Shown piece after piece: positions 1 through 61,518 of a stretch of 64,000 nucleotides of DNA (the first letter of the stretch is position 1; each line of letters opens with the position of its first letter). The DNA is taken from the sequence record MG592671.1; one strand, 5' to 3'. The notes below the pieces were generated by a model. It saw only the letters and a program-made list of their open reading frames with translations, did no database searches and was not told the origin of the DNA. Position numbers and translations under genes: made by a program.

Positions 1-1
1 C

Positions 2-40663: not shown

Positions 40664-40828
40664 AGATATAGTATATCGAATTTAATACCAACATTACGTG
40701 TGGTCACTCCCACACGTAATGTTACAATAGAGTACACTAAAGATGTAACGTATTCTGCAAATAGTATTTTGTGGAAAGTAGATATTACACTTTTTGAAAA
40801 ACCACATATAAATTACAAGGAGCGTAAT

Positions 40829-43699: not shown

Positions 43700-43829
43700 C
43701 GTAATATGCAGCTAAACATTTGGCTGCATTATTTTTGATACGTTATCACGCAAAATGTTATAATTAATTAATAAACATAGCAAGACAAAGTTTTGCTAGA
43801 AAAAAAACTAAACTACAAGGAAATGCCCC

Positions 43830-44549: not shown

Positions 44550-45245
44550 TGGATTGGGGTAAAGATTACTACGGTTTTGTTTACCTCTGGTTTGATGCAA
44601 AAAGAAGAAAATTTTGTGTAGGGTCGCATCACGGCTCTACACAAGACGGATATATCACATCAACAGGTCATATGCCTAGAGCATATAAAAAAAAGACCAC
44701 AAGATTTCAAGCGTCGAATTTTACAGTATAACACTGATATAAATGATTTCTTAGATACTCAAAAATTGGAACAAAATTGGCTAAATTTAATCAAAGATGA
44801 AGAACTAGATTTGTCTGAAAATGCTAATACTGTCCGATATTACAATAGAAAGAAAGCTGCTACTGGTTGTGGTTTTAAAGGAAAACGACATACTAAGGAA
44901 TACTGTGAGACAATGAGTGCTAATAGAACAGGTACTCAAAATCCCATGTATGGTAGAGAGCAAACGGATGACGGACTAGCTGCATTACAGAAGGGTTGGG
45001 ATTCAGAAAATAGCATCAACAAAAGAGGATGTACTGATGAAGAACTATGTAAAGCAGTATGGGGTAGAGCTAAAGGTTGGTTTTTAACTCCTAAAGGATC
45101 ATTTATTTCTTCTCAGTTAGCAGCAGAAATAAATGACGTCCCAGATTATACTATTAGAAAATGGTGTCATAATAGATACGATAAATCTAATTCTAGAACG
45201 ATACTCCCTGAAGATGAAAACTTGTGGGGTTTTAAACCTAAATAG
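44549..45245 (+). pseudogene. GIY-YIG (Seg-like) homing endonuclease split by a +1 frameshift in an A8 run
   Basis: GFVYLW...FCVGSHHGSTQDGYITS; removing one A from 44687-44694 gives AYKKRPQDFKRRILQY...LEQNWL continuing into ORF 44766-45245. Confidence 0.8.
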
Positions 45246-45304
45246 AACAGATTATTTTTTAAGGGACTTGTCAAGTCCCTTTCATTAAGACTATAGGAGC
45301 AAGG

Positions 45305-47095
45305 ATGAAACCAGCAAAGCAAGACGCAGCTAGACTAAAAATACATAACGATTATAGACAGCGTCGTCCGTTAGATAAAGGACTTGAAGCACAAACTGTT
45401 GATCTAACAGTGAATCAAAAAGATTTTGCAGTGCATTTGCCTGCGAGCATGGAGATACCATTCAATATGACTCGCTGGGGTGAGAATGAACAAACAGGCC
45501 AACGTTGTGTTGATTTTATGCAAAAAGATAACGGTGCGTTTTACTATAATTGGTCATTGTACTCCGCTGGTCATGCAAAGAATGTGCCAACCCTAATTAA
45601 GAAAGATTTGTTTATCAACAGGGATCCTGATGGTATCTTGTTTGGAGATTCTGGCGGATTCCAAGCAGCAGTTGGATCAGGAGTGCATGGAGACATGGAT
45701 TGGTCACATATCCCGTCAGTGGATGATTTATGTCAAAAAACACTAGATTGGCTAGAAGCGACATCTAACTATTCAATGATTCTCGATTTACCAACATTTG
45801 TGTTAGGTAAAAATGATAAGATTGTATCTCACGAGCAATGCCTACAGCAGACAATGTATAATATTGAATACTTTCTAGCGCATCGAGAGCCAGGTAAAAC
45901 TAACTTCTTGAATGTACTACAAGGCCTTGATGAGCACGACACTGATGAATGGTATAACGCTGTTAAGAAATTTAATAACCCTGAAACTGTACTAGATCAA
46001 GAATATTACTACATTCCATTAGCACAAATGCCAAACCCCATTGAGCCTAAAGAGGTTGCTAAGCCAGAAAAGCTCTCTGAAAATAGTTCTTTAGCTGAGG
46101 AAGAGAAATTTAAAGAAGATGAGAAAAAGTACAAAAAGTATCGAGTCGAGTTGAATTTATATAAAAAGGCCTTAAAACGCAAACCGGAAACTTTAGCTAG
46201 TATTGTTGATATTGACGGTTTTAAGTACATTAAGGCAAAATCACCATGGGTAAAAAAGTTCGGTTCTAACACAAAGCTAGGAGACCGAGCACTTGAAGGA
46301 TGGGCAATGTCAGGACACATGGTACATAATGTTGATTTAGCGTTACGTCAATTCTGCATTTTATTGCGTGACGGGAACATCGATGATCGACAACACTGGG
46401 TACACATGCTAGGATTAGCAACTATGAAAGCTGCTGTAACGCTAACAGCGATACAGCGTAAGATTCGAACTCTGCCTGGTTGTGAAAACTTCGTCATTAG
46501 TTATGATAGTTCAAGCGCATCACAATTTATGCAGTTTGGCAAGATGATTATCGGAGCATACTCTGATCCAGTATCTAAGGTGGCTACATTCACGCTATGG
46601 AAGCCACCAGCAGACTATGGTTCGTGCGGCTCTAAGCAGTTAATTAAAGATTCATTAGCATACCATGATGCTAATCAGCCTAAGGAAAAGGAACTTAGGA
46701 CTGATTTAAAGAAAAATGAGATACGATTTGAAACTTACGTGATGAATAATATCAGTGTTGGTGATTTATGCTATAAGTTACCCACAGAGCCAGGAAATCG
46801 CCCGTGGGATACAACATCTAATAGTTTTGTTTACTGTCAAAATGTAGAAGCTATTATTCGTAGTTTTCAATGGATTAACGAAATGGCAGATGCTGATAGG
46901 ACAGATGTAGTAGAGCCGGAACTACTTGATTTTAAAAACAGAATCATACATGAGATTTTTTCTGATCCAGATCCAGTACAGGCAGTGACGCACTACCAAA
47001 CTATAATTAGGCCACTGTTCGCAAAAGAGATTATACCTAATAAGTGTAGTTCGCATCACAATGTTCTAAATAACAATGATTTATTTGGGTGGTAA
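45305..47095 (+). CDS. dpdA: tRNA-guanine-transglycosylase-like DNA-modifying enzyme (DpdA, probably DpdA2-type)
   Basis: TGT-fold motifs FGDSGGFQ, MILDLP, NVLQG, GWAMSG, HMLG, SYDSSS; no TGT CxCxxC zinc site seen; clustered with que genes. Confidence 0.8.
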   Translation: MKPAKQDAARLKIHNDYRQRRPLDKGLEAQTVDLTVNQKDFAVHLPASMEIPFNMTRWGENEQTGQRCVDFMQKDNGAFYYNWSLYSAGHAKNVPTLIKKDLFINRDPDGILFGDSGGFQAAVGSGVHGDMDWSHIPSVDDLCQKTLDWLEATSNYSMILDLPTFVLGKNDKIVSHEQCLQQTMYNIEYFLAHREPGKTNFLNVLQGLDEHDTDEWYNAVKKFNNPETVLDQEYYYIPLAQMPNPIEPKEVAKPEKLSENSSLAEEEKFKEDEKKYKKYRVELNLYKKALKRKPETLASIVDIDGFKYIKAKSPWVKKFGSNTKLGDRALEGWAMSGHMVHNVDLALRQFCILLRDGNIDDRQHWVHMLGLATMKAAVTLTAIQRKIRTLPGCENFVISYDSSSASQFMQFGKMIIGAYSDPVSKVATFTLWKPPADYGSCGSKQLIKDSLAYHDANQPKEKELRTDLKKNEIRFETYVMNNISVGDLCYKLPTEPGNRPWDTTSNSFVYCQNVEAIIRSFQWINEMADADRTDVVEPELLDFKNRIIHEIFSDPDPVQAVTHYQTIIRPLFAKEIIPNKCSSHHNVLNNNDLFGW

Positions 47096-47122
47096 TACAC
47101 CCAAAATTAACGGAGAATAAAA

Positions 47123-48235
47123 ATGTTTAACGAATTATTTGATTTCAATGATAGATATCGTAGCACTACATCTGATGAATTAGCAGACCAGATAGATAAG
47201 TATTTGACAACAACTAATAATCCTCCACTTAAGAAATACCAAGTTATGAGTACTGATTATGGTGCTGAATGGGAAATTGCAGACATTGACCGCAGTTGTA
47301 CGTTACCAGAAGGGCTAACTTGGGATGGCAAAGATCAAACAGTAATGAATACTAATGGCATTGCAACTGACCCGCACCTTAACTCTGAAATTAGAACATG
47401 GAATTATGGTGGTGAAATGAACACCAAGCCATGTAACACTATTGATGAAATAGTTGAGTTGTTTAAAACACTACTACGCAATCAACCAGAATGTACTGTT
47501 AATAACTCGTGTAACTTGCATAATCACTATAGGATTCCAGGATTGGACGTGGATGGATTGAAACGCGTCGTATCCTATTATTATGTCTATCGAGATGAAA
47601 TGATTGAAGTATCAGACTATATCCCTACACCTAGCGAGCAAGGGTATAACGCATCAAATTGCTCAACGAGCGATTTAAAGATAGTTGAAGACCGCTACAA
47701 ACATCACACTAAGCCATTAGGTGGGTCGAGACACGGAGATCTTCCAGAGTTTGTTCTGCTGAATAAGCTATTAGCAGAAGATGAAGAGTCATTCCACCAA
47801 GCAAGTGTTATTACACAAAGTGGGGTTGATACTTTAGATGCTAATGCTGCTCGAGCTAGTATTAACACGTGGCAAATGCGTAAATCTCGATCAAAAGAGC
47901 ATGCTGACATTGAATATGAGAAACGACCGTTTGCTGAATCTGGGACTATTGAAATGCGAATGCATCATGGAACAACTGATGTTGAAAAATACAAAAATAG
48001 TATTATTTGGGACATTAACATCTTAAACGCAGCCTTGAACACTGGTGAAACCCCACGTGAGATATTTGATCGTTTATGGGAAGGAAAATCCCAAAAAGAC
48101 GTTCTCCCAACATACATCCCTGTTGATTTAGAAAAATATAAAATCTTCAAGATGACTAAAAATGATGGATCAAACGCACGTAGGTCACTAGTAAAGGCCA
48201 CAATTAATGATCTCAAAAACACAGGCAAAATTTAA
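47123..48235 (+). CDS. Putative amidoligase (COOH-NH2 ligase, glutamine-synthetase-like fold)
   Basis: DYGAEWE, GGEMNTKP, NNSCNLHNHYRIP, SINT, TIEMRMHHGT match the GxExE / E..P / SCxxHxH / TxExR..GT pattern. Confidence 0.75.
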   Translation: MFNELFDFNDRYRSTTSDELADQIDKYLTTTNNPPLKKYQVMSTDYGAEWEIADIDRSCTLPEGLTWDGKDQTVMNTNGIATDPHLNSEIRTWNYGGEMNTKPCNTIDEIVELFKTLLRNQPECTVNNSCNLHNHYRIPGLDVDGLKRVVSYYYVYRDEMIEVSDYIPTPSEQGYNASNCSTSDLKIVEDRYKHHTKPLGGSRHGDLPEFVLLNKLLAEDEESFHQASVITQSGVDTLDANAARASINTWQMRKSRSKEHADIEYEKRPFAESGTIEMRMHHGTTDVEKYKNSIIWDINILNAALNTGETPREIFDRLWEGKSQKDVLPTYIPVDLEKYKIFKMTKNDGSNARRSLVKATINDLKNTGKI

Positions 48236-48297
48236 TTGAGTTGGTAGTCGCCAACTATAATGTTATAATTAAGTAACACAAAACACGGAGTTTAAAA

Positions 48298-49197
48298 ATG
48301 AGTATCGATAAAACTAAAGAACAGGCTAGCAAATTTCTTGGCAATGATGTTGAATATAAAGATCAATACGACAAGAGTTTATTAGTACCTGTTGAAAGAG
48401 TGCATAATCGCACTAAGTACGCTATCGAAGAGAATAACCTGCCGTTTGTAGGGTTTGACACTTGGAATGCTTTTGAAGTATCGTTCCAGTTAAAGAACGG
48501 GTTACCAGTCGCAGCAGTAGCTAAGATTAGCTATCCTTGTAACACCCACAGTATTATTGAATCAAAATCCATTAAGTTATATTTGAACAGTTATAACATG
48601 ACTAAGTTCGACATGACTAAAGGCGAAGCGTTGACGTTTGTAGGAGATCAAATTGCCAAAGATCTAAGTGAGATTTTAGGCGGCGATGTAGATTGTACTT
48701 TACACGTTAATGAGTTTGACGGCCCAGAGCAAGTTTTTGACACAAGTGAATTTACTGATATTGAGCAATTAGTTGACGGTGAGCACATTATTTTTGATCA
48801 ATATAATGAAACACCTGATATTCTAAAGAAAAAGCGCGGGAAAGGCGGATACATTGCAGTCTCTACTAGTTTACTTCGCTCTAATTGTCGTATTACTAAT
48901 CAACCAGATTGGGGTGATGCATATATTATTATGGATGGAGATTCTCTTCCAACTATGGAATCATTACTCCAGTATATTGTGTCTTTCCGTAAGGAATCGC
49001 ACTTCCATGAAGAATGTTGCGAGATGTTATTTAAACGACTTATGGACAAGTTTAATCCTGATGAGCTGATGGTAACTTGCTTATACACACGCCGTGGTGG
49101 CATAGACATTAATCCATCAAGAGCTACACACGAGTATTTGCTTCCGGAATTGCTTGCTGATACAGAGATTTTAACAGCTAAGACTATGCGTCAGTAA
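48298..49197 (+). CDS. queF: preQ0 (7-cyano-7-deazaguanine) reductase, bimodular gammaproteobacterial type
   Basis: IIESKSIKLYLNS, LRSNCRITNQPDWG, HFHEECCE, RRGGIDINP. Confidence 0.95.
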   Translation: MSIDKTKEQASKFLGNDVEYKDQYDKSLLVPVERVHNRTKYAIEENNLPFVGFDTWNAFEVSFQLKNGLPVAAVAKISYPCNTHSIIESKSIKLYLNSYNMTKFDMTKGEALTFVGDQIAKDLSEILGGDVDCTLHVNEFDGPEQVFDTSEFTDIEQLVDGEHIIFDQYNETPDILKKKRGKGGYIAVSTSLLRSNCRITNQPDWGDAYIIMDGDSLPTMESLLQYIVSFRKESHFHEECCEMLFKRLMDKFNPDELMVTCLYTRRGGIDINPSRATHEYLLPELLADTEILTAKTMRQ

Positions 49198-49243
49198 CTA
49201 CTACCTAAGGGGCTAGGTAGGTCCCTTATATTAAGGAGACATT

Positions 49244-49873
49244 ATGTTTAACCTAGAGTACAATATAAAAACATTAAGTTGTTTTTCTTTGTTCCATATA
49301 TTCATTATTGCATTGTCAAACTATGCAGTGCAATTCCCGATTAATTTGTTTGGGTTCCATTCAACATTAGGCGCTTTCACCTTCCCGTTTATCTTTTTAG
49401 CAACTGATCTCACTGTTCGTGTATATGGCGCACAAGCTGCTCGCAAGATAATTACTATAGGCATGCTTCCTGCACTTGTTGTGTCATATATAGTCAGTAT
49501 TGTATTTTTTAATGGCGACTATCAAGGACTTCAGGGATTGTACGAATTTAACACGTTTGTATTCCGTATAGCTCTTGCTAGTTTTGCAGCTTATACAATT
49601 GGACAGGTTTTAGACATTGTAGTATTCAACAAATTACGTGACTTGAAAACATGGTGGGTCGCGCCAGCTTGTTCTAATGTGTTTGGTGCTGCCATTGATA
49701 CGATTGTGTTCTTTAGCATTGCATTTTACATGAGTTCAGATGCATTTATGGCAGCTAACTGGGTAGAAATTGGCATTGTTGACTATTTCATAAAAATTGC
49801 GGTTGCTTTGTTAATGTTCCTTCCGTTATACGGAGTGCTACTAACAGCGATATCGAAGCGTATTCACAAGTAA
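49244..49873 (+). CDS. yhhQ: preQ0/preQ1 transporter
   Basis: Multi-TM; FPFIFLATDLTVRVYG, RIALASFAAY..GQVLDI.VFNKLR, WWVAP..S..FG..IDT. Confidence 0.92.
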   Translation: MFNLEYNIKTLSCFSLFHIFIIALSNYAVQFPINLFGFHSTLGAFTFPFIFLATDLTVRVYGAQAARKIITIGMLPALVVSYIVSIVFFNGDYQGLQGLYEFNTFVFRIALASFAAYTIGQVLDIVVFNKLRDLKTWWVAPACSNVFGAAIDTIVFFSIAFYMSSDAFMAANWVEIGIVDYFIKIAVALLMFLPLYGVLLTAISKRIHK

Positions 49874-49933
49874 TGTTATAATTAAAGTGTAGCCTAGCTA
49901 CACTTTAATAATCTGCGTAATAGCAGCCGGGAC

Positions 49934-49967
49934 AGCGGACCGTAACCCCGCTATATAAATTCAGGAG
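49934..49967 (+). ncRNA. preQ1-I riboswitch-like element (variant) overlapping the queC RBS
   Basis: Stem AGCGG/CCGCT, 9-nt loop ACCGTAACC, A-rich tail ATATAAATTCAGGAG ending in the RBS. Confidence 0.5.
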
Positions 49968-49974
49968 AAAATAA

Positions 49975-50736
49975 ATGAACTTAAAAGAAGCACTTGCTAT
50001 ATTACCAGAAACAAAAAATAATGTTGTATCTGTATTGTCTGGTGGTTTAGACAGCACTATCATGACTTATGTACTTGTCCATAAGTATGGAGCTAGTAAC
50101 GTCTTTGCACTATCATATAACTATGGGCAAAAGCAATCACTTGAGCTAAAGAAAGCTGAAGAAACATGTAACGCTTTGGGAATCCAGCATAAAATCATAG
50201 ATATTGGTTTTTTGGGCGACATTGTATCACCCGTTTGCGCAAACATTGCCACATCTGATGTAGCTATGCCAACCATCCATGAAGTATTAGGTGACCCTCA
50301 ACCACCATCATACGTTCCATACCGAAACTTAATTCTCAATAGTACAGCAATGGCATTTGCTGAAACTAACAACGCATCGTATATTTTTACAGGGTTGCAA
50401 GTTCATGATGAGTACGGCTATTGGGATACATCGCAAAAATTTGTTGATTCATTAAATGCAGTGTCATCATTAAATCGTATGCATAAAATTGAAGTTCGCG
50501 CTCCATTTTCAATGCTATCTAAATATGAGGAAATTAATATTGCTACTGAGTTAGGTAATGTGGATTTTACTAAAACATTAACATGTTATGATCCAAACAA
50601 CTTAGGACATTCATGTGGAGTTTGTCCTAGTTGCTCTGAGCGTATTAAAAACTTTATGCTATCTGGGATTGCTGATCCAATCAATTACTCGATTGATATT
50701 GATTGGGACAGTGGTATCAAACAACATAAAAAATAA
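49975..50736 (+). CDS. queC: 7-cyano-7-deazaguanine synthase
   Basis: VLSGGLDST, SYVPYRNLI, TCY...CGVCPSCSER. Confidence 0.95.
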   Translation: MNLKEALAILPETKNNVVSVLSGGLDSTIMTYVLVHKYGASNVFALSYNYGQKQSLELKKAEETCNALGIQHKIIDIGFLGDIVSPVCANIATSDVAMPTIHEVLGDPQPPSYVPYRNLILNSTAMAFAETNNASYIFTGLQVHDEYGYWDTSQKFVDSLNAVSSLNRMHKIEVRAPFSMLSKYEEINIATELGNVDFTKTLTCYDPNNLGHSCGVCPSCSERIKNFMLSGIADPINYSIDIDWDSGIKQHKK

Positions 50737-50768
50737 AGAATATTTCTAGGCATAAAAAGGAGACTACA

Positions 50769-51383
50769 ATGTGTGGTATATTTGCTTCTAAATCAAAAGA
50801 AAAATTTATTGAGTTAATGGAACTGAATGCGTATAGAGGAACGTTTTCTCATAGTATTGCTTGTGTTGATTTAACAACATCCAGCATTGTAGATCTTATT
50901 AAAAATGTTGGTCCGTTAGATGTCAACTCCATTCCTAATATTCCTAATGTTTACTATATAGGCCATGTGCAGGCACCGACAACGCAGGATGGGATGTGTG
51001 ACGCAAATATACATCCTGCGGTTGAAAACAACACATATATGTGGCATAATGGCATCATAAAAGAGAAATGTATTAGCGAGCTACAAAAAGAAACAGGTAT
51101 AGATAGTAATTGGGATACGCTATTACTACTGTCTTATATCAATAATAATCACAGTTTATCAGAAGTTGATGGAACGTTTGCATGTGTTGTAATCGACAAA
51201 AGTATTAAAATTTTCAGGAATGCAATATCCCCAATGTTTATTGATGATGAGCTCAACCTAAGCTCAGTTAGATTCAAAAACGCAAAACCACTAACACCTA
51301 ATGTTATACACAATATTATTGATAATACCATTGTTGAAACGGATAATCACTTCGTAACTAAAAACAACCCATATAATCTATAA
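50769..51383 (+). CDS. Class II (Ntn) glutamine amidotransferase, stand-alone
   Basis: N-terminal MCGI, NAYRG, GHVQAPT, WHNGII, WDT, DGTFA. Confidence 0.85.
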   Translation: MCGIFASKSKEKFIELMELNAYRGTFSHSIACVDLTTSSIVDLIKNVGPLDVNSIPNIPNVYYIGHVQAPTTQDGMCDANIHPAVENNTYMWHNGIIKEKCISELQKETGIDSNWDTLLLLSYINNNHSLSEVDGTFACVVIDKSIKIFRNAISPMFIDDELNLSSVRFKNAKPLTPNVIHNIIDNTIVETDNHFVTKNNPYNL

Positions 51384-51392
51384 TATCAAGCT

Positions 51393-51425
51393 ATGCGGTA
51401 AGTAATCCCGCATTAAAAAAACTAC
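51393..51425 (+). ncRNA. preQ1-I riboswitch-like aptamer upstream of folE
   Basis: Stem ATGCGG/CCGCAT, loop TAAGTAATC (U first, C last), tail TAAAAAAACTAC as in class I preQ1 aptamers. Confidence 0.65.
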
Positions 51426-51464
51426 ATCCAAAACATATTTTGGATCAAACAAGGAAAAATAAAA

Positions 51465-52331
51465 ATGTGCGATAATCATAAAAGTCAAGATGTACAATTA
51501 ATGGAAAATATTCTCAACGCGCTAGATGGTATCAATCTATCCGCAGCAGTGCAAGACGTATCGTCGTTAACTCCAGGAAATCTAGAAGACGAAAGATTAT
51601 TCATGGAAAAAATGATTAGCATTCTCGATAATGAATCTAAAAAAGCAACTCATGAACGAATTCGAGAGCGCATTCTAGAAGCTGATGCTAAGTTCCATGC
51701 TAATTCTAATATTGCAGAATTTATTAATGATGGTGAAATTGATGAGCTTATTGATGAATGTACTGTAGCATTTGAGAAAGTATTAGATTGTTTGATTATT
51801 GATAGAGAAAATGACCCTAACTCGATGGATACTCCACGACGTTTAGCTAAGATGTACATCTTAGAAACAATGAGCGGTCGATTTACTCCAGCACCTAAAG
51901 TAACAGCATTCCCTAACACGCATACAAACCGATCAGCCGGCTTTAGCGGCCTGTTAGTGGTTAAGACTGAAATCATCTCAATGTGTTCTCATCACCACCA
52001 GCCAGTAAAAGGCACAGTATACACTGGCATCATTCCAGGCGAAACAGTTTTAGGTTTATCAAAATATAGTCGAATTGCGCAGCACTTAGCAAAAAGAGGC
52101 ACGTTACAAGAAGAACTAGCAGAGGATATTGCTCAGAAAGTTATGGAAGAAACTGATTCTCCATCAGTTGCTGTCTATATCGAAGCCACTCATGGTTGTG
52201 TGACACACCGCGGTGTTATGGCGCACGACTCCACTACTCAAACAACAGTAGTACATGGTGAATTTATGTCAGATGGAACTCTTAGAAAGGAATTCCACGA
52301 CAATATCATGTATCAAAAATTAAACAAATAA
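51465..52331 (+). CDS. folE: GTP cyclohydrolase I
   Basis: DTPRRLAKMY, SMCSHHHQP, GLSKYSRI, LQEEL, HGCVTHRGV. Confidence 0.95.
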   Translation: MCDNHKSQDVQLMENILNALDGINLSAAVQDVSSLTPGNLEDERLFMEKMISILDNESKKATHERIRERILEADAKFHANSNIAEFINDGEIDELIDECTVAFEKVLDCLIIDRENDPNSMDTPRRLAKMYILETMSGRFTPAPKVTAFPNTHTNRSAGFSGLLVVKTEIISMCSHHHQPVKGTVYTGIIPGETVLGLSKYSRIAQHLAKRGTLQEELAEDIAQKVMEETDSPSVAVYIEATHGCVTHRGVMAHDSTTQTTVVHGEFMSDGTLRKEFHDNIMYQKLNK

Positions 52332-52334
52332 TTC

Positions 52335-52360
52335 AAAAGCAGCCGAAGCTGCTTTTCTTT
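52335..52360 (+). terminator. Terminator after folE
   Basis: AAAAGCAGC-CGAA-GCTGCTTTTCTTT. Confidence 0.8.
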
Positions 52361-52375
52361 CCCTAGGAGAAAAAT

Positions 52376-53083
52376 ATGTCAACTATCCCAACGTTTATTT
52401 CAGTAATTTTAGATGAAACTGGCTCAATGCGAGGTCAAGAGAAGAACGTGATTGACTCAACAAATGAATACATCACAGGTCACCGTGAAATTCCCGAGTG
52501 TTACTTCAACCTACTAAAGTTTGATGCTTACAATACATGGGTTGCACCAACATTTAATAACCTAAATGAAGCTTTTGACTCCAAGCCAGAACTAGACGTT
52601 CGTGTTCTTTGTGAAAAACAAGCCATCAAAGATGTTGATCTTCTCACAGAACAAGATTATAACCCACGTGGTATGACTAATCTATATGATGCTGTTGGTA
52701 CTGCTGTTACTCAGCTAGAAACACAGGTTGCTAATCTGAAAGAGTCAAATGTTATCTTGGTTATTAATACTGATGGTCAAGAGAACGCTTCAAAAGAGTA
52801 CACTGCTGAGACTATCAAAACTCTTCTAAAAGATAAGCAAGAGAATCATAACTGGCAAGTTATCTTCTTAGGTGCTGATCTAAGTAAAGCTCAATCTTCA
52901 CAGATGTCTGCTTCGATGGGAATTAGTAGTGACATGACATTTAGTTATTCTAAGTGCGCAACACGTTCAGTACATTCAGACTTAACAGCCGCATCAACTT
53001 TATATGCATCAGCAGCAAGTTCTGGCTCAATGTCTAACAATGATATCAAAGCCGCATTCACTAGTATGGACAAGTACAAGTAG
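52376..53083 (+). CDS. von Willebrand factor A domain protein
   Basis: MIDAS ILDETGSM, GMTNLYDAVG, INTDGQENAS, FLGA. Confidence 0.88.
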   Translation: MSTIPTFISVILDETGSMRGQEKNVIDSTNEYITGHREIPECYFNLLKFDAYNTWVAPTFNNLNEAFDSKPELDVRVLCEKQAIKDVDLLTEQDYNPRGMTNLYDAVGTAVTQLETQVANLKESNVILVINTDGQENASKEYTAETIKTLLKDKQENHNWQVIFLGADLSKAQSSQMSASMGISSDMTFSYSKCATRSVHSDLTAASTLYASAASSGSMSNNDIKAAFTSMDKYK

Positions 53084-53084
53084 C

Positions 53085-53420
53085 ATGCCTAACGATAATT
53101 TATTCCGACGGTGGAAAGGGGACTCAACAAGATCCCCTAATCTACAAAAACCTAAAAAAATGGACCTAGATAAAGCATACGATATGGTAGTTGCAGTATT
53201 ATCTGATAAAGAGCGAGTTTACGCAGAGGTTATTGCAGCGAAGCTCAATATTGAACGACATGTAGTAAAGCAAGTGTTCCACAAGTTAAACCTAGAAGGT
53301 AAAATGTCTAAAGCTCAAAAGTGGGGCGGTTGGAGAATGCACACTAGATATGACATGCACGGGGACGATCCAGTGCAATGGGAAGCTAATTGGTATAACG
53401 TTTATACGGATAAGTTCTAG
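53085..53420 (+). CDS. Winged-helix-like DNA-binding protein
   Basis: Start moved to ATG 53085; VYAEVIAAKLNIERHVVKQVFHKLNLEG resembles an HTH. Confidence 0.5.
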   Translation: MPNDNLFRRWKGDSTRSPNLQKPKKMDLDKAYDMVVAVLSDKERVYAEVIAAKLNIERHVVKQVFHKLNLEGKMSKAQKWGGWRMHTRYDMHGDDPVQWEANWYNVYTDKF

Positions 53421-53488
53421 TTAAATGTTATAATAAGTTATACAAAACAGACAGAGTTAGCTCTGTCTTTAATAATATAAGGAACATT

Positions 53489-53794
53489 ATGGGAGTAAGT
53501 TTTTACTCATGTAGTGCTTGTAATGAAGCAGTATATGAAGAATATATTAGATCATGTGAATGTTGTCAAGAAGAGATATGCTCAGATTGTGCAGGGTCAA
53601 GTAGTCAATATGGTGATGATGATCTTATGAATGATGATTATGAGTGGCTAGAACATAATTGCCCGTATTGTAATGGCACTGTGATAACTGACGCTGAGAT
53701 TATCAACTACTTATTTAATCACCAAATTGATCGAGATCGAGAAGAAGTAATGGAAGAATTCCATATCCATAGAACATTGGAGAAAGGTAAATGA
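53489..53794 (+). CDS. Cys-rich (zinc-binding) small protein
   Basis: CSAC, CECC, CSDC, CPYC. Confidence 0.65.
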   Translation: MGVSFYSCSACNEAVYEEYIRSCECCQEEICSDCAGSSSQYGDDDLMNDDYEWLEHNCPYCNGTVITDAEIINYLFNHQIDRDREEVMEEFHIHRTLEKGK

Positions 53795-54690
53795 TTAGGG
53801 AAAAACAATATCGCTATAGTGAGATTTTCGGAGAAACCTTTCAAGGAGAGGGGAATCACACCGGGAAGAATACTTTGTGGCTAAGATGGTTTGGATGTAA
53901 CAAAACCTGCTATCTCTTTGGTCAAGATAAAGAGAATCCCGTTCCTAAAAAAGAAATGTATTACGAAACTATTGATATCACTAATATAACTGATATTCAA
54001 CAGCTACCTATACAAAATATGGGATGTGACAGCTATCATAGTTGGCACCCACGATACCGTCATTTAGCACACAAAGACACAGCCAAAGACTTAGCGCAAA
54101 AGTTAATAGATCTTAATAAGAACGAACATAACCCAGAAGGGCTTTTTATTCATCCTAAATCAGGACAAGATATCCATTTATGCTTTACTGGCGGTGAATC
54201 AATGATGGCTCAAGATGGCATTATTGATGTGCTAAACGCGTTGATTTCCGTTGGTAATTATCCTAAAAATGTAACTATTGAATCTAATGGAACAGTTAAT
54301 CTAAGATCTCATCAAGACTGGACTAACATGTTTAATCAAGACATTACTTTATTTTGGAGCATTTCACCTAAATTAGAATCAGTTAGCGGAGAAGCTTGGG
54401 ATAAATCAATATGCCCGGATACGCTATACGGTTACAAGCAGATTGTTGATAACGGACAGTTGAAATTTGTTTGTGATAATTCAGATGAATCTTGGGAAGA
54501 GATTGAAAAAGCTATTCTTGAATACCAGCAACGTGGGGTTACTTGGCCAATCTGGATTATGCCAGAGGGCGCAGAGCAGTCAGCACAATCAAGACATGAT
54601 GCAGATATTGCAGTAGAAGCAGTCAAGCGCGGATATTACTTTGCATCAAGAGTACATGCTACTGTATTTGGTGCGGTCGCTGGTAAGTAA
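53791..54690 (+). CDS. queE: 7-carboxy-7-deazaguanine synthase (radical SAM)
   Basis: ETFQGEG, RWFGCNKTC...CDSYHSW, CFTGGES, TIESNG, ISPKL, RVHA. Confidence 0.92.
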   Translation: MIREKQYRYSEIFGETFQGEGNHTGKNTLWLRWFGCNKTCYLFGQDKENPVPKKEMYYETIDITNITDIQQLPIQNMGCDSYHSWHPRYRHLAHKDTAKDLAQKLIDLNKNEHNPEGLFIHPKSGQDIHLCFTGGESMMAQDGIIDVLNALISVGNYPKNVTIESNGTVNLRSHQDWTNMFNQDITLFWSISPKLESVSGEAWDKSICPDTLYGYKQIVDNGQLKFVCDNSDESWEEIEKAILEYQQRGVTWPIWIMPEGAEQSAQSRHDADIAVEAVKRGYYFASRVHATVFGAVAGK

Positions 54691-54694
54691 TACT

Positions 54695-54718
54695 AAGGAG
54701 CCTTGGGCTCCTTTTTTT
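54695..54718 (+). terminator. Terminator after queE
   Basis: AAGGAGCC-TTG-GGCTCCTTTTTTT. Confidence 0.85.
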
Positions 54719-54756
54719 GTCTATAAATATTCGTATACTTTTCTGAGGATATAGTT

Positions 54757-55887
54757 ATGACTAGACTTACAAGATCAAATGGAGTTTTCTATTCGAATAT
54801 TCCAGAAAGGGTTGTGTTGGGCCCTAATACAAATAACAAAACAATAACCCCGATTAACCTAATCGGGCAGCAGCACATCTCTTACGGCAAAGCGCAAAAT
54901 GAAAATTACGTGTGGTTAGTTGAAAATTTCGCAAGTTCAACCTCTCCAGATCATATTTTAGGACAAACGTGGTATAAGCCTTCAACAAGTAACACTGGTG
55001 AATTACTCATCGCGCCTAACGATAATATCGGAACATCTGACTGGTTAACCGTACCTGTAATATCGCTCGTGCAAGCAGAGCCTGCTATAAGTGATTCTAT
55101 GCCAGGTCGTATGATTATACAAAATAATAATTCGTTAAAGATGCTCATTAATGGATCATGGAGAACTATCCCGACTAGAGTGTCAGGAGAACAATACACA
55201 GAAAGACTATTAACTATTAGATACGATCCTGAATTATATGCAGAAGGGGAAATAGTTGAAATTAATGACCCTGAATTCAATGGCACTGGTAAACCCACTT
55301 TACTTGTGAACTCAATTAGACACAATGCAAGTTGGAGCAACGTGGCTAGGTTTAACGAAGGTGGGGCGTTTACTTCGTTACTGGATGTTCCAAACGGCCT
55401 AACTGTATCAGGAACTGACGCATTGAGATTTGGCGGTAATTATTTTTGGAATGCTGAGGTCCAAGCAAAAGATGTTAGAGATCCTAGTAAGCAAAAATCA
55501 TGGGAATTGAGTGGTATATTCAATGTTGACTCATCAACAACACAAGTTTCTAATTTACCAACTGACTCATCTAGATACGTCAAGCCTGATCCAAGAATAG
55601 TAAGCGGAACATTAACCAATACTACAGTTATTTTTGATATTGTTAAAACTGTTGAATTAGAAGACGAAGGCACTGAAGATTGGGATGTTAGAGTTATAGC
55701 GGAAACTGAGTTTCCACTATTATCTGATATAACAGATCTTAGCTCTGGAAATATAGATGTTGAGCGTTATATAACGAATGGCGACTTATACGGTATAATG
55801 TTTCAAGGAACCACTAATGAAAGTGCTAATCTTCAATGGTCTATTGCGTTCACAGTGCAAGGAACCCCGAACACGACAATAGCGTAA
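54757..55887 (+). CDS. Late virion structural protein (tail fibre/baseplate-related)
   Basis: LIGQQHISYGKAQNENYVWLVENFAS...GQTWY N-term; TATAAATA at 54722. Confidence 0.6.
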   Translation: MTRLTRSNGVFYSNIPERVVLGPNTNNKTITPINLIGQQHISYGKAQNENYVWLVENFASSTSPDHILGQTWYKPSTSNTGELLIAPNDNIGTSDWLTVPVISLVQAEPAISDSMPGRMIIQNNNSLKMLINGSWRTIPTRVSGEQYTERLLTIRYDPELYAEGEIVEINDPEFNGTGKPTLLVNSIRHNASWSNVARFNEGGAFTSLLDVPNGLTVSGTDALRFGGNYFWNAEVQAKDVRDPSKQKSWELSGIFNVDSSTTQVSNLPTDSSRYVKPDPRIVSGTLTNTTVIFDIVKTVELEDEGTEDWDVRVIAETEFPLLSDITDLSSGNIDVERYITNGDLYGIMFQGTTNESANLQWSIAFTVQGTPNTTIA

Positions 55888-55949
55888 ACACTCATGCAAA
55901 ATGTGTTATATTAATGTACAAATTAATTTAATAGCATTGAGAGTTTATT

Positions 55950-56834
55950 ATGAAAAAATTGTTTATTATAGCCAGCGTTGTTGCTGGCTCTCTTGCCTTA
56001 GTAGGTTGTGGGCAGTCTGAGTCTGAAAAGCAGGCTGAGCATAAGCGACAGATGGAATGTCTTGACATGGGCTACGATAAACACTGTAATGTTATTCGTG
56101 ACCGAGTTAGAGTGCAACCAGTGCGAGCGCCTCAGTTTAACAATATTGAAATTGAGTACGATTACGGAAATGTACATTACGGCCCAGCCATGCCAGGCTC
56201 GTATGTCAATTATTATGGCGATACGCGTTACGGGTATTGGGATATTTTCGGCAACTTTAAATTTTACGACCCGTATAGTACATATGCCACTAATACAAAT
56301 AGTTTCTTACTTGGTGCTGGACTTGGTGGCCTAGTTGCCTACAAGATGAGTAAAACGGATTGGACATCAAAGAACCCGAATGGTTGGACATCAAAGTCTC
56401 GTAAGCTTGAAAAGCCGCGTGATAAAAACGGAAAAGTTATCACAGTCGCAGAAGCGAAAAAACGTGCAGAACAGTCTAAGCGCGATAAAGCTGCTCACGC
56501 TAAGAAGCTAAAAGCGAAAAAAGCTGCTAAGACTAAAGAGCTAAAAGCTAAACAGGCTAAAACTAATGCCAAGAAAGCTGCCAAGAAACCAACAGTTTCA
56601 GAAACTGCTAAGAAAAAGGCAGAATTGAAAAAGAAATTAGCAGATAGACAAGCCGCTAAAACTAACGGCAAGGGCAATAATAAGCTAGGCGGGCAGAAAG
56701 CTGCTGAGAGAAAAATTCAACAAAAAAATCTCTCTGCAACTAAGACTCAACCACGCAGTAAAAAAACAGTTAGTCAGCAAAAACAGTTTAAGGCTAAGTC
56801 TACTTCATCATATAAGTCTAAGAAACAGTACTAA
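55950..56834 (+). CDS. Lipoprotein with Lys/Ala-rich C-terminal half
   Basis: Signal peptide with lipobox LVG|C; C-terminal half dominated by K and A. Confidence 0.75.
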   Translation: MKKLFIIASVVAGSLALVGCGQSESEKQAEHKRQMECLDMGYDKHCNVIRDRVRVQPVRAPQFNNIEIEYDYGNVHYGPAMPGSYVNYYGDTRYGYWDIFGNFKFYDPYSTYATNTNSFLLGAGLGGLVAYKMSKTDWTSKNPNGWTSKSRKLEKPRDKNGKVITVAEAKKRAEQSKRDKAAHAKKLKAKKAAKTKELKAKQAKTNAKKAAKKPTVSETAKKKAELKKKLADRQAAKTNGKGNNKLGGQKAAERKIQQKNLSATKTQPRSKKTVSQQKQFKAKSTSSYKSKKQY

Positions 56835-56896
56835 TCTATCGCCAATATACTAGTATATTGGCTCATTAACAATTAACCTTTAGACAGGAATATACA

Positions 56897-58243
56897 ATGT
56901 CAGACCAGAACCATGAAGTTCAAGTTGTTGCTCTAAAAGCAGTTCGACCACACACCAACGCCGACCGCCTACAATTGGCTACTATCTTTGGTAACCAGAT
57001 TGTTGTTGGCTTAGATCATAAAGATGGCGATCTAGGTATCTACTTCAACTGTGATCTACAGCTATCAGAAGAGTTTGCAAAAGCAAACGATCTTGTGAAG
57101 CGAAAAGATGACGAAGGTAATCCAGCTGGCGGTATGTTTGAAGAAAACCGTCGTGTGAAATGTCAAAAACTCCGAGGAGAAAAATCAGATGGATTTTTTA
57201 TACCACTTAGTTCTCTTGAGTTTGCTGGTAGTACCGCTAAGTTGAAAGTTGGTGACTCATTTAGCGAGTTCAACGGAACTCCAATTTGTTACAAATACGT
57301 ATCAAAACTATCTAAGTCGTGTGGTAAAGGTGGTCTTGGTAAGCATCAAGCAGGCCGTAAAAACTGTATGTTCAACGAACACAAGAGCACGTCTCATGCT
57401 GGTCGTAACATGCACCAGATCATTGATACTAATGCTCGCATTGTTATCACTGAAAAGCTACACGGGACATCACAACGTTACGGTCGTGTTCTAGTTGAGC
57501 GTGAACTAACTTGGTTAGAAAAGCAAGCGCAAAAGTTCCTGTCTAAGTACATCAAAGTACAAGACACTATGTGGGGCTACATGAACGGCACACGTCGTGT
57601 TGTTATCCGCAATGTGCATGAGAATGGCAACGCTCCTCATCAACCACAACTGCGTGATATGGCAGTAGAACCATTCAAAGATAATCTACACAAAGGTGAA
57701 GTAATTTACTTTGAGGTTGTTGGTTTTACTCCAGAAGGCAAGCCTATCATGCCTAGTGTAGACACTAAGAAAATGCGTGACAAGGCATTCACTAAGCAGT
57801 TCGCTAATGTTGGTGATAAGCGCACAATGCAGTACTCATACGGCTGTGAAGAAAAGCAACACGATGTTTACGTGTACCGTATTACTCAAGTTAATGAGTC
57901 AGGTAAAGAGTTCGAGCTGTCTTGGGATCACGTTAAAAAGCGTTGTGACGAGTTAGGCGTGAAGTACACTCCTGAAGTGTTTGCTGGATCAGTAGAAGAA
58001 CTTATCAGAACTACACTAATAGACGATTGTGAAGATGAAGTTTCTGAAGAAAATTTACTTCGCTCTTTAGATAACATGTCTGAAGGTGAAAGCATCGTTG
58101 ATCCATCACATGTTCGTGAAGGTATTTGTATTCGATTAGATGGTTCTGAGTGGGTTGTGTTTAAGCACAAGTCATTCACATTTAAGACTCTAGAATCAAT
58201 TGAAAAAGATTCCGGTGTTGAGAATATGGAAGATCAGTCGTAA
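56897..58243 (+). CDS. ATP-dependent RNA ligase (DRB0094/Rnl-like with N-terminal OB-like domain)
   Basis: HTNADRLQLA N-term; motif I ITEKLHGTS; YFEVVG; REGICIR; FKHKS. Confidence 0.85.
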   Translation: MSDQNHEVQVVALKAVRPHTNADRLQLATIFGNQIVVGLDHKDGDLGIYFNCDLQLSEEFAKANDLVKRKDDEGNPAGGMFEENRRVKCQKLRGEKSDGFFIPLSSLEFAGSTAKLKVGDSFSEFNGTPICYKYVSKLSKSCGKGGLGKHQAGRKNCMFNEHKSTSHAGRNMHQIIDTNARIVITEKLHGTSQRYGRVLVERELTWLEKQAQKFLSKYIKVQDTMWGYMNGTRRVVIRNVHENGNAPHQPQLRDMAVEPFKDNLHKGEVIYFEVVGFTPEGKPIMPSVDTKKMRDKAFTKQFANVGDKRTMQYSYGCEEKQHDVYVYRITQVNESGKEFELSWDHVKKRCDELGVKYTPEVFAGSVEELIRTTLIDDCEDEVSEENLLRSLDNMSEGESIVDPSHVREGICIRLDGSEWVVFKHKSFTFKTLESIEKDSGVENMEDQS

Positions 58244-58288
58244 GATCTATGGTGCTGCTTAGGCAGCACTTATTAACAAGAGGTGAGT

Positions 58289-58408
58289 ATGCAAAGTAAT
58301 CTAAACTGTGAATGTTGTGCATCTGTAATGCAGACCGACTTTAGTGGTAACGTTTGGTGCACTATTGTTAAAACGGCAGTAACTGTTAAAGGTACGCTAG
58401 ATGAATAA
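58289..58408 (+). CDS. 39-aa Cys-containing small protein (below ORF-track cutoff)
   Basis: GAGGTG RBS; MQSNLNCECCASVMQTDFSGNVWCTIVKTAVTVKGTLDE; overlaps next start. Confidence 0.5.
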   Translation: MQSNLNCECCASVMQTDFSGNVWCTIVKTAVTVKGTLDE

Positions 58409-59024
58409 AATTGAAGCTTATCAATGTAGTATCTGTGGTATTGTCCACGCAGATGAAAACTATATCAAAGAGCACGAAGATTACTGTATTGCTGAAGTTC
58501 AATATGAGCTCAAGCGCCATGCTGAACAAAACAAAGCTCGCGAGTATCTAGGAACTTTCCGCACTAGAGCTGCATCTGTTCGTCATCTAATTCAGTTACT
58601 AAATGATGAGCGTGAGGAAATAGTTGACGCACACTGTGTGATAGAATACTACAACACTCCGAAAGCTATCAGTCCTTTAATCATCACTGGATACAAATCT
58701 CATGGCTTTGCAACCCCGCAAAAACCCCACCCTAAACCAGCAAGTCACTCAGCTCCTATAGGCAAGAAACTATGGAATATGTGGCCAGGACAGCCGAAAG
58801 AAGAGCAGGCATTGGCGTTTGAATTAGAGTTCTACACAGCTCAGCAAAAGAAAGATATAAAATACTCGTTTGATTGGATATTCACTCATATCGCTGGGGT
58901 GAACCAAGGTAGTGCTGGTAGCTGGGGACCATCCACGTGTCATACCAACCATTGCTCTGATGACACTACGCACCACCATTATATTACATTCTGGATAGAC
59001 GATTGGTGTAAGGGATTTGCATAG
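58401..59024 (+). CDS. Hypothetical protein with N-terminal zinc-finger-like motif
   Basis: YQCSICGIVH...HEDYC. Confidence 0.6.
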   Translation: MNKIEAYQCSICGIVHADENYIKEHEDYCIAEVQYELKRHAEQNKAREYLGTFRTRAASVRHLIQLLNDEREEIVDAHCVIEYYNTPKAISPLIITGYKSHGFATPQKPHPKPASHSAPIGKKLWNMWPGQPKEEQALAFELEFYTAQQKKDIKYSFDWIFTHIAGVNQGSAGSWGPSTCHTNHCSDDTTHHHYITFWIDDWCKGFA

Positions 59025-59153
59025 GTGTGATACACTCCTATATTAAATGTTATAATGTAATATAACAAAAAATAAAAGCAAGAATGAAATAGTCAAGATA
59101 GAGAACCCACAGCCAAACGCATGTGGCAATATTTAGAATTAGGAGATAAAAGG

Positions 59154-59816
59154 ATGTTTGAGATTAGTAAGCAGATTTCACTCTGTTATGGGCACCGAGT
59201 CTGGTCACAAGACTTAGAAGAGGAATTTTGTGCATCTGGAGACACTGCCTGTAAGTGCAAGCACCAACATGGTCATCAAGGTGAGATTCAAGTCTTTCTA
59301 GAAGCTTCTGATGTAAATCATCAAGGCTTTGTGACAGATTTCAAACATCTAGGCTGGCTTAGAGATTTTGTAGATAATTATTTTGATCACAAAATGATTT
59401 ATGACCTAAATGACCCAGGTCTAGGCTTCTTGTGTAATGGGATAGTTCGTATGGGCTTTGCTCAAGATTACAAGATCAATAATGAGATAGTTCGTTTTGA
59501 AAAACCAGAAGCATTTGAACTATACAGTCAATGGGACAATTTGATTATTCCGATGAAAGAGATTACAGTTGAAGGAAAAACAGCTGGATATGTGCTTGAT
59601 TTGGAAGGTTTCGAGGATCAGTTAGAATCGTCACACTATGAGATTCTAGAAGGTTACTTCTTTGTTAATTTTGTTCCTACTTCTGAAAATCTTTGTAAGT
59701 TCATTCACGGGCTGGCACAAGAAAAGATGAAAAAGATTGGCGTTACTGTATCAAAAGTCCTGTGGCAAGAAACTCCTAAATCACAAGCAACTTTCATCGC
59801 CAAACCATTGAAATAA
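59154..59816 (+). CDS. queD: 6-carboxy-5,6,7,8-tetrahydropterin synthase
   Basis: CYGHR, CKHQHGH, TDFKHL, DHKMI, PTSENL, ETP; start moved to ATG 59154 (RBS AGGAG/AAGG). Confidence 0.9.
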   Translation: MFEISKQISLCYGHRVWSQDLEEEFCASGDTACKCKHQHGHQGEIQVFLEASDVNHQGFVTDFKHLGWLRDFVDNYFDHKMIYDLNDPGLGFLCNGIVRMGFAQDYKINNEIVRFEKPEAFELYSQWDNLIIPMKEITVEGKTAGYVLDLEGFEDQLESSHYEILEGYFFVNFVPTSENLCKFIHGLAQEKMKKIGVTVSKVLWQETPKSQATFIAKPLK

Positions 59817-59825
59817 GGAGACACA

Positions 59826-60110
59826 ATGTCTTTACGTATGTTATCAGACTATATTCTAGTCGAACTAAACGAGGCTGAAAGTACCTCAGCTGGCGGTATT
59901 GCTATTGTTAAAGCAGAACAGCCATGTGTTGGAACTGTTATTTCAGCAGGGCCAGGAAAGCACGACCAACGTGGTAACTTTATTGAATGTCCCCTCAAAG
60001 GAGGCGAGACTGTTATCTTTGGTAAAGCTTCTTTGAATCAAACGCTTGAGCATGAAGGCGTTAATTATCACGTTATGCGTTATGAAGACATTTTTGCGAT
60101 TGAGGCTTAA
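59826..60110 (+). CDS. groES: Co-chaperonin GroES (gp31-like)
   Basis: LRMLSDYILVE, SAGGIAI, GTVISAGPG, GETVIF, VMRYEDIFA. Confidence 0.9.
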   Translation: MSLRMLSDYILVELNEAESTSAGGIAIVKAEQPCVGTVISAGPGKHDQRGNFIECPLKGGETVIFGKASLNQTLEHEGVNYHVMRYEDIFAIEA

Positions 60111-60146
60111 GGGCCTCAATCCTTATTAATCTTGTAAGGAAATAGT

Positions 60147-60743
60147 ATGAAACAAAAACCATTAATACCCTTTTCTTGGATGCCTGGAAGCTGGGGACTT
60201 AAAGGCACGACTCGAGATAGAGCCAAAGCTGAATATGAGCTCGATGGATATGAACTTGAAATAGCCCTAGCTAAGATTGACTTTAACGGTAAAGAACTGG
60301 AAACAGCAATATTAGAAATAGACTACAAACACAATAAAATTGATGATGAAAAGTACGAAGCCCAGAAGATTGAGATGATGGATGATTCAAAAGAAAAACA
60401 GTTGCTGGCTGTTGAATCTCTATTAAAATTTGGGCATATAACTGATGTTGAAGCTAGAAAGCGTCATGCAACCATTTCCGGTGAACCATTTTTCGATTTT
60501 GATGTAGTTCTCGTTGATGGTGAATTAGAGATTGAAGTTGAGTACAATCAACTATTTGTTGAGCATATCCGACAATTTGGGTATGATGATGAATTGGAGT
60601 CTGATGCTATCGATGCATACATATCAGATTTAGGTAGAAAAATATCACAAACCGAAGATGAGCAGTTATTAGATGCAAACGATGCATTAGATGATCAAAT
60701 CATTAAAGCAGAGCGTGATGGTGAATTTACTTCTTATAGATAA
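60147..60743 (+). CDS. Hypothetical acidic protein
   Basis: 198 aa ORF, IPFSWMPGSWGLKG N-term. Confidence 0.6.
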   Translation: MKQKPLIPFSWMPGSWGLKGTTRDRAKAEYELDGYELEIALAKIDFNGKELETAILEIDYKHNKIDDEKYEAQKIEMMDDSKEKQLLAVESLLKFGHITDVEARKRHATISGEPFFDFDVVLVDGELEIEVEYNQLFVEHIRQFGYDDELESDAIDAYISDLGRKISQTEDEQLLDANDALDDQIIKAERDGEFTSYR

Positions 60744-60773
60744 AAAAAAAAGTCCGCAATGCGGACTTTTTTT
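60742..60773. terminator. Bidirectional terminator
   Basis: A-tract-GTCCGC-AAT-GCGGAC-T-tract between convergent ORFs. Confidence 0.85.
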
Positions 60774-60794
60774 ATGACTTTTTATAATAGATAA

Positions 60795-61499: not shown

Positions 61500-61518
61500 A
61501 ATATAGTTCTCCTATGAA

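Follow-up and report, generated by a model that had tools for sequence, protein, structure and literature searches.

Positions 45305-59816 of the window (the whole 64,000-nucleotide stretch that was analysed, which forms the final 64 kb of sequence record MG592671.1) carry genes for 7-deazaguanine biosynthesis together with a gene for a putative DNA guanine transglycosylase. The region corresponds, at 100% identity, to positions 330216-344727 of the record, a 348,911-bp 'partial genome' of Vibrio phage 2.275.O._10N.286.54.E11 (hereafter 2.275.O), a giant marine phage with T4-like baseplate, portal, protease and capsid genes in the remainder of the record. Its host is Vibrio cyclitrophicus, in line with the gammaproteobacterial host that an earlier note on this DNA had predicted. 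Phages are known to escape restriction by 7-deazaguanine modification of their DNA, and the region probably encodes a route that puts a preQ1-type 7-deazaguanine in place of guanine in the DNA of 2.275.O. All six enzymes and the transporter of this putative route were identified, with their catalytic motifs visible in the sequence.

The eight genes named in the earlier note (dpdA-like, queF, yhhQ, queC, a stand-alone glutamine amidotransferase (GAT) gene, folE, queE and queD) were all recovered by family scans, motifs and fold and appear intact; together they provide the complete FolE-QueD-QueE-QueC-QueF route to preQ1 and an enzyme resembling tRNA-guanine transglycosylase (TGT) and DpdA. They are non-contiguous, with at least eight genes without an assigned pathway role interspersed among them. 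All genes of the cluster region lie on the + strand, are separated by short gaps and have ribosome-binding sites.

GTP would be converted to 7-carboxy-7-deazaguanine (CDG) by FolE, QueD and a QueE-like enzyme. FolE, a GTP cyclohydrolase I (AUS03055; 51465-52331), matches PF01227 at 131 bits and has an N-terminal extension of about 100 amino acids; a terminator-like hairpin lies 3' of its gene. QueD, the CPH4 (6-carboxytetrahydropterin) synthase (AUS03064; 59121-59816), matches PF01242 at 79 bits, carries the CxxxHGH motif (C46-x3-H50-G-H52) and contains an insertion of about 100 amino acids inside the PTPS fold. The QueE-like radical SAM enzyme (CDG synthase, AUS03059; 53791-54690) matches phrog_2076 (E 1e-37), has the FQGEG motif and is 33% identical to gp162 of the jumbo phage PA5oct. 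In an alignment, its long cysteine insert is common to PA5oct gp162 and the QueE of Pseudomonas phage pf16 and is missing from the QueE proteins of JenK1 and immuto. The start of queE overlaps by 4 nt a Cys-rich open reading frame (ORF) of 101 amino acids (53489-53794, + strand; CSAC, CECC, CSDC and CPYC) that has no family match. Because of this overlap, the ORF is probably translationally coupled to queE, and its product might serve the radical SAM enzyme as a small partner protein binding Zn or an Fe-S cluster. The pf16 gene that overlaps queE shows no similarity to it and was rejected as an equivalent.

From CDG, preQ0 would be made by QueC (preQ0 synthase, AUS03053; 49975-50736), which matches PF06508 at 172 bits and TIGR00364 at 162 bits (cut-off 150) and contains the SGGLDS loop and four Zn cysteines (C204/C214/C217/C220). 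The reduction of preQ0 to preQ1 would fall to a bimodular, NADPH-dependent QueF (48298-49197), in which QueF_N (113 bits) and QueF (70 bits) both score over the Pfam cut-off. The NADPH motif (ESKSIKLY) and the Cys, Asp and His catalytic residues (C197, D204 and the HFHE motif) are present, and TIGR03138 gives 258 bits, under its equivalog cut-off of 293. The salvage transporter reported in the earlier note is YhhQ, a preQ0/preQ1 importer (AUS03052; 49244-49873; NF008406, 320 bits, cut-off 252), which would bring extra precursor from outside the cell; yhhQ is uncommon among phage isolates, occurring in about six true phages. For QueC, FolE, QueD and YhhQ, the family models score over cut-off and the signature motifs are present.

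The transglycosylase candidate and its family

The candidate transglycosylase, a protein of 596 amino acids annotated as hypothetical (AUS03049; 45305-47095, + strand), is best read as a TGT-superfamily enzyme belonging to a sister family of DpdA2. Sequence searches of AUS03049 against Pfam, PHROG, NCBIfam and the PDB gave no match, and no Pfam match of any kind was obtained among 33 members of its family. PF01702 matched neither AUS03049 nor anything elsewhere in the genome, with just one of the 33 family members reaching E 0.088. The DpdA2 of phage VH7D, an experimentally validated enzyme, escapes PF01702 and PF23859 as well, so these Pfam negatives carry no weight. The AlphaFold (AF2) model of AUS03049 (pLDDT 83, pTM 0.85) has the predicted fold of the TGT superfamily: its top 50 matches in a Foldseek search of the PDB are all TGTs (probability 1.0, best E 6e-6), and VIA aligned 313 residues with a TGT at Z 18.6. 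In the ESM Atlas, viral clusters bearing TGT and DpdA adjoin AUS03049.

The family comprises more than 3,330 metagenomic homologues of about 500 amino acids, with more than 590 IMG/VR loci. Its invariant motifs are GDSGGFQ, LD-P, QG, H-LG and S-D--S, and the invariant residues include D115-S-G-G-x-Q120, D161, G207, H367, G370 and D401. The DSGG[FY]Q signature reads G114-D115-S-G-G-F-Q120 in AUS03049, where D115, S116, G117, G118 and Q120 are invariant in the 33 family members. D401 aligns with the aspartate of ISYDS in DpdA2 and would be equivalent to Asp280 of TGT. D401 is likely the nucleophile and D115 the acid/base.

The relationship to DpdA2 emerged from profile comparison. A profile built around VH7D gp012, nt-1 VPFG_00171 and pf16 gp80 (AND75003, DpdA2 according to Hutinet et al.) was aligned by hhalign with the AUS03049-family profile over 226 columns (98%, E 2e-13), and this alignment spans all the catalytic motifs (DSGG[FL]Q, QG, HxLG and ISYDS). 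A direct BLASTP between AUS03049 and DpdA2 reached just E 3e-4 across 48 residues. The corresponding hhalign values were 43%, in the C-terminal half only, for immuto DpdA3 and 0.3% for JenK1 DpdA1, and membership of DpdA3 and DpdA1 was rejected. AUS03049 gave no match to PF23859 (DpdA) and none to PF20314 (DUF6610), and it was not assigned to DpdA4 or bacterial DpdA either. The DpdA2 of VH7D puts preQ1 into DNA (PMC10516641), and we infer that AUS03049 likewise acts on DNA.

The cluster as a whole resembles those of the DpdA2-type phages (Schizotequatrovirus VH7D, KVP40, phi-Grn1, phi-ST2 and 6E35.1a, and Pseudomonas phage pf16), which have the same local order of transglycosylase, bimodular QueF, QueC and GAT and, as in 2.275.O, FolE, QueD and QueE nearby. 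Identities to 2.275.O are 63% for QueC (VH7D and nt-1, KVP40-type), 45% for QueF (KVP40 group) and 35% for GAT. In contrast to these phages, the transglycosylase of 2.275.O is not a DpdA2 by direct search, and the amidoligase-like gene described below and yhhQ are extra features of 2.275.O. A DUF3109 search, which also missed VH7D's own DpdM, revealed no DpdM homologue in 2.275.O.

To place the family in its genomic context, 80 of its IMG/VR loci were scanned with tblastn, 39 of which had at least 8 kb downstream and 43 at least 8 kb upstream of the transglycosylase gene. Among the former, 32 had FolE downstream and 29 a QueE-like gene, in every case on the same strand; 34 had a homologue of PA5oct gp167, which is GT1-like, and 25 a phosphoribosyltransferase. 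All 38 FolE matches were downstream and on the same strand, and none of the 43 loci with sufficient upstream sequence had FolE upstream, which served as an internal control. QueC and QueF were detected in none of the 80 loci. Across the IMG/VR loci L027-L106 and the PA5oct locus (L003), most of the family occurs in a conserved module of TGT-like gene, GT1-like protein, FolE, phosphoribosyltransferase and QueE-like gene, without QueC or QueF. Such a module points to a base derived from CDG, possibly glycosylated and so far uncharacterised, in many uncultured phages.

PA5oct encodes a homologue of AUS03049 (gp168, 29% identity) together with FolE, two PTPS-family genes, the QueE-like gene and a phosphoribosyltransferase; no QueC was found in it. 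PA5oct DNA is resistant to restriction enzymes whose recognition sites contain G and is attacked by modified-G-specific nucleases, in a study that names no transglycosylase for this phage (PMC12191111). The gene order in PA5oct is polymerase, structural protein and TGT-like gene, and in phage Phosso a virion structural protein lies directly 5' of the TGT-like gene. In 2.275.O, the stretch just 5' of the transglycosylase gene (40700-45245, + strand) encodes a family B DNA polymerase (40700-43699), a conserved protein of 239 amino acids and a NUMOD3 (homing-endonuclease-like) ORF. PA5oct-type phages (Wroclawvirus) resemble 2.275.O in having a homologous TGT-like gene at the same place, downstream of a DNA polymerase and a structural protein, and a homologous QueE-like gene with the same long cysteine spacing. 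The G modification of PA5oct DNA is experimental (PMC12191111). The two differ in that QueC and QueF are missing from PA5oct and from most of the family, which have the GT1-like protein and the phosphoribosyltransferase, while 2.275.O shows the reverse, no gp167-like glycosyltransferase and no phosphoribosyltransferase having been found in it.

A QueF-linked amidoligase-like gene

Between the transglycosylase gene and queF lies a gene that the earlier note had overlooked (47123-48235, + strand; AUS03050, 370 amino acids), starting 27 nt after the transglycosylase gene. Its product is an Amidoligase_2-like carboxylate-amine ligase of the glutamine synthetase (GS) fold and a candidate tailoring enzyme. 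AUS03050 scores 21.9 bits against PF12224 (cut-off 22), and PF12224 is present in 96 of its 100 nearest Atlas clusters. The top 50 structural matches of its AF2 model (pLDDT 89.5) are all GS, glutamate-cysteine ligase (GCL), YbdK or PafA, and VIA gave Z values of up to 10, about 10 being reached with GshF, YbdK, gamma-glutamylcysteine synthetase and GS, all ATP-dependent carboxylate-amine ligases. Family-model match and fold agree in this assignment, and in the model the invariant residues E49, E51, E98, H133, H135, E277 and R279 lie on strands of the predicted active-site sheet.

Only 13 close homologues of AUS03050 were found, 5 of which (the 2.275.O copy included) occur in a QueF-linked context; a search of 50,697 phage isolates recovered it only in 2.275.O and, as a weak match, in one other. 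The order TGT-like gene, amidoligase, low-molecular-weight (LMW) phosphatase and, further on, QueF and YhhQ is kept in three metagenomic contigs (L019, L108 and L109), of which L019 ends within QueF and L108 runs on with QueC and FolE. Their TGT-like proteins are 76% (L019) and 72% (L108) identical to AUS03049, and that of L109 (424 amino acids) matches the family in hhalign at 100%. A fourth metagenomic contig keeps the order amidoligase, LMW phosphatase and QueF. The phosphatase gene, of the LMW phosphotyrosine-phosphatase/ArsC family, overlaps the amidoligase stop by 4 nt in L019 (5925-6434), L108 (3188-3733) and L109 (3939-4457). The QueF-linked members of the transglycosylase family (n=4) read ISYDSSS around D401, as DpdA2 does, with Y400 and S403, whereas the family majority reads ISFDxAS. 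This may hint at a change of specificity, although weakly, since four sequences only are concerned.

The product of QueF is a primary amine, and DpdM (methyl) and DpdN (formyl) modify that amine, so that an N-acyl-preQ1 product is a reasonable hypothesis. Since at least four related metagenomic contigs keep the amidoligase beside QueF, the candidate enzyme may acylate preQ1. As in the DpdM and DpdN systems, an extra enzyme gene stands between the transglycosylase and QueF whose product could act on the 7-aminomethyl group; in contrast to them, the candidate in 2.275.O is a putative ATP-dependent carboxylate-amine ligase of the Amidoligase_2 type. We found no paper linking amidoligases to 7-deazaguanines, and amidoligase domains have been noted beside thymidine-hypermodification genes (PMC8989533). 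Two further candidates for amidoligase homologues, PA5oct gp167 (which is GT1-like) and the 'primase' of Phosso, were rejected.

That the Amidoligase_2-like enzyme would join a carboxylate to preQ1 at its aminomethyl group is speculative, and we hold it to be somewhat less probable than its opposite. More tentative still is the joint proposal that AUS03049 represents a fifth phage DpdA-like clade, sister to DpdA2, outside the Pfam models and corresponding to the missing transglycosylase of 2.275.O and PA5oct-type jumbo phages, and that the QueF-linked amidoligase would use (d)preQ1 as its substrate, giving an N-acyl (e.g. gamma-glutamyl) aminomethyl-7-deazaguanine in DNA, a base not yet described.

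The amidotransferase beside QueC and alternative readings

The stand-alone class II (Ntn) GAT-like protein (50769-51383) starts with MCGIF, which provides the N-terminal cysteine (C2) of the class, and contains an H93-N-G-I-I motif with the Asn-Gly of the oxyanion site; its relatives align from residue 1. It matches phrog_12378 (E 8e-40), reaches 19 bits with GATase_6 (under the cut-off of 27) and E 6e-5 with the N-terminal region of GlmS, far under cut-off. GAT directly follows QueC in KVP40, VH7D, phi-Grn1, phi-ST2, nt-1, 6E35.1a and pf16, all DpdA2-type phages, as well as in a contig from ENA and in a cluster with a DpdN-like formyltransferase, so that the linkage is seen in three cluster types. 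The QueC of the close relative L108 is just 32% identical to that of 2.275.O and is not accompanied by GAT, which, given the 63% identity to the KVP40-type QueC, suggests that QueC and GAT were transferred together. QueC, a PP-loop enzyme with a relationship to the asparagine synthetase domain, uses ammonia (PMC13329287); GAT is therefore probably its glutamine-hydrolysing ammonia supplier.

The earlier note had proposed two branches, one to preQ1 and one to archaeosine (G+) or 7-amido-7-deazaguanine (ADG) through a split, reversed Gat-QueC pair. The first is borne out by the genes, whereas the second, in which GAT and QueC would act as a split archaeosine synthase and the DNA would contain dG+ (or dADG) alongside dPreQ1, is improbable. 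In the deazaguanine DNA clusters of phages 9g and JenK1, a class II amidotransferase and the PP-loop enzyme QueC do go together, the fused Gat-QueC of 9g gives dG+ with DpdA (PMC6884629), and the GAT of 2.275.O has its N-terminal cysteine intact and adjoins QueC; in addition, traces of dG+ and dADG occur in nt-1, where QueC and GAT are likewise paired. However, it was ArcS and not GAT that reproduced the dG+ of nt-1, and phi-Grn1 and phi-ST2, which have the QueF-QueC-GAT set, contain dPreQ1 and mdPreQ1 in their DNA but neither dG+ nor dADG (both zero; PMC10516641, Table 1). In phage 6E35.1a, 15% of dG has given way to a nucleoside whose mass fits dPreQ1 (bioRxiv 10.1101/2024.12.24.630238). The systems of 9g and JenK1 also differ in being a single fused protein of 471 amino acids with Gat at the N-terminus, together with DpdA1, without QueF and with dG+ as product; in 2.275.O there are two separate genes, QueC comes first, QueF is present, and GAT is unrelated at the sequence level to the Gat domain of the fusion (BLASTP E 0.41 with JenK1 Gat-QueC, not significant). 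The GAT family has 497 representatives; among the best 150, all but two measure about 160-235 amino acids and the longest 333, so none is long enough for a QueC fusion. The occurrence of the same QueC-GAT pair in a formyl-preQ1-type cluster also argues against an archaeosine role. Further elaboration of the base, which the earlier note had also considered, may still occur, through another gene, the amidoligase.

The reading in which the locus makes a preQ1-type base for phage DNA has also to be weighed against two others. It is unlikely, though marginally less so than the archaeosine branch, that AUS03049 inserts a base such as CDG, 7-deazaguanine or preQ0 instead of preQ1, which may hold for most of its family, QueC and QueF having been added later and hardly affecting the DNA: the lack of QueC and QueF from the 80 IMG/VR loci, the lack of QueC in PA5oct and the promiscuity of DpdA2 enzymes (PMC10516641) would fit such a scenario, whereas the retention of the TGT-like, amidoligase, QueF and YhhQ module in L019, L108 and L109 and the DpdA2-like Y400, S403 and ISYDSSS of the four QueF-linked members speak for preQ1. 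Very improbable is a pathway serving tRNA, in which the genes would raise preQ1 for queuosine-tRNA of the host and the TGT-like protein would act on tRNA or otherwise. It is true that bacterial tRNA TGT naturally takes preQ1 as its substrate, that YhhQ and QueF are host-type genes of the tRNA pathway and that the fold matches of AUS03049 are tRNA enzymes; but its closest named family is the DNA-acting DpdA2, it has neither a match to the family model of canonical tRNA TGT (PF01702) nor the Zn-binding CxCxxC...H subdomain, the homologue-bearing PA5oct has G-modified DNA, the phage DNA polymerase is encoded 1.6 kb upstream of the gene, and all phages with such clusters tested to date modify DNA (PMC6884629, PMC10516641).

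Several observations weigh against the preferred preQ1-in-DNA reading and its amidoligase extension. The AUS03049 family is remote from the proven enzymes, with 17% identity to DpdA2 over the 226 columns, the Zn-binding cysteines of tRNA TGT are missing from AUS03049, with no conserved cysteine triad, and the majority of the family occurs without QueC or QueF. The QueE-like protein scores only 21-35 bits with the QueE TIGRFAMs, whose cut-offs are 200-300, and its cysteines (C36-x3-C40-x38-C79) depart from Cx3Cx2C and are atypical. As for the amidoligase, shorter and more distant homologues occur in early-gene regions without Que genes, and the relatives have it translationally coupled to an LMW phosphatase, which was not found anywhere in the 2.275.O genome.

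On the preferred reading, ammonia released by GAT from glutamine would supply QueC in the adjacent gene, QueF would deliver preQ1, and the putative 596-residue TGT-fold enzyme would insert the free base into double-stranded DNA in exchange for guanine, with protection against restriction as the expected outcome.

Surroundings, prior record and meaning

The interval between folE and queD holds genes for a VWA protein, a winged helix-turn-helix protein, the Cys-rich ORF, a coiled-coil protein, an RNA ligase, an ORF of 207 amino acids and a protein whose matching PHROG family carries the annotation 'virion structural protein'. The VWA-domain protein and the small winged-helix protein (52376-53420, + strand) lie between folE and queE; in L108, an Acb1 (anti-CBASS) gene (8008-8502) directly follows folE, where 2.275.O has the VWA gene. 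The RNA ligase, with a PHA02142-type OB-fold domain (56897-58243, + strand), lies inside the cluster span, and a GroES-like gene (59826-60110) follows queD; VH7D similarly has gp31 and an RNA ligase near its que genes. A perfect 13-bp bidirectional terminator hairpin at a convergent gene boundary (60745-60773) gives weak, sub-threshold Rfam leader matches. No preQ1 riboswitch was found in 43000-61500, and a scan for sigma-70 promoters gave 53 hits against 58.6 expected, that is, not above chance. At the other end of the window, positions 1-5899 (- strand) contain the end of a giant ORF annotated as hypothetical (record positions 279495-290810, about 3,770 amino acids), followed by a CBM5/12 protein of 1,287 amino acids.

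This exact phage was tabulated by Hutinet et al. 2019 (Supplementary Data 1), with FolE AUS03055, QueD AUS03064, QueE AUS03059, QueC AUS03053 and YhhQ AUS03052, in a PSI-BLAST-based table whose DpdA, DpdA2 and QueF columns are blank for 2.275.O; the biosynthetic cluster had therefore already been catalogued, without a transglycosylase. According to Cui et al. 2023, a member of a DpdA subgroup is now known for each virus carrying these genes. For PA5oct, Iyer et al. 2021 speak of a 'deazaguanine synthesis/incorporation system', so the TGT-like gene of that phage may already have been noticed. The type of system is thus known and this instance is partly catalogued; the transglycosylase family and the amidoligase link are what it adds.

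As a candidate, AUS03049 would fill the transglycosylase gap of the 2019 table, and its family is very abundant in viromes and tightly linked to FolE and QueE. The same family would explain the experimental G modification of the therapeutic jumbo phage PA5oct. For the GAT that recurs after QueC in many phages, we propose a role in glutamine-dependent preQ0 synthesis and not in archaeosine formation, and the conserved amidoligase beside QueF could mark a new preQ1-derived DNA base.

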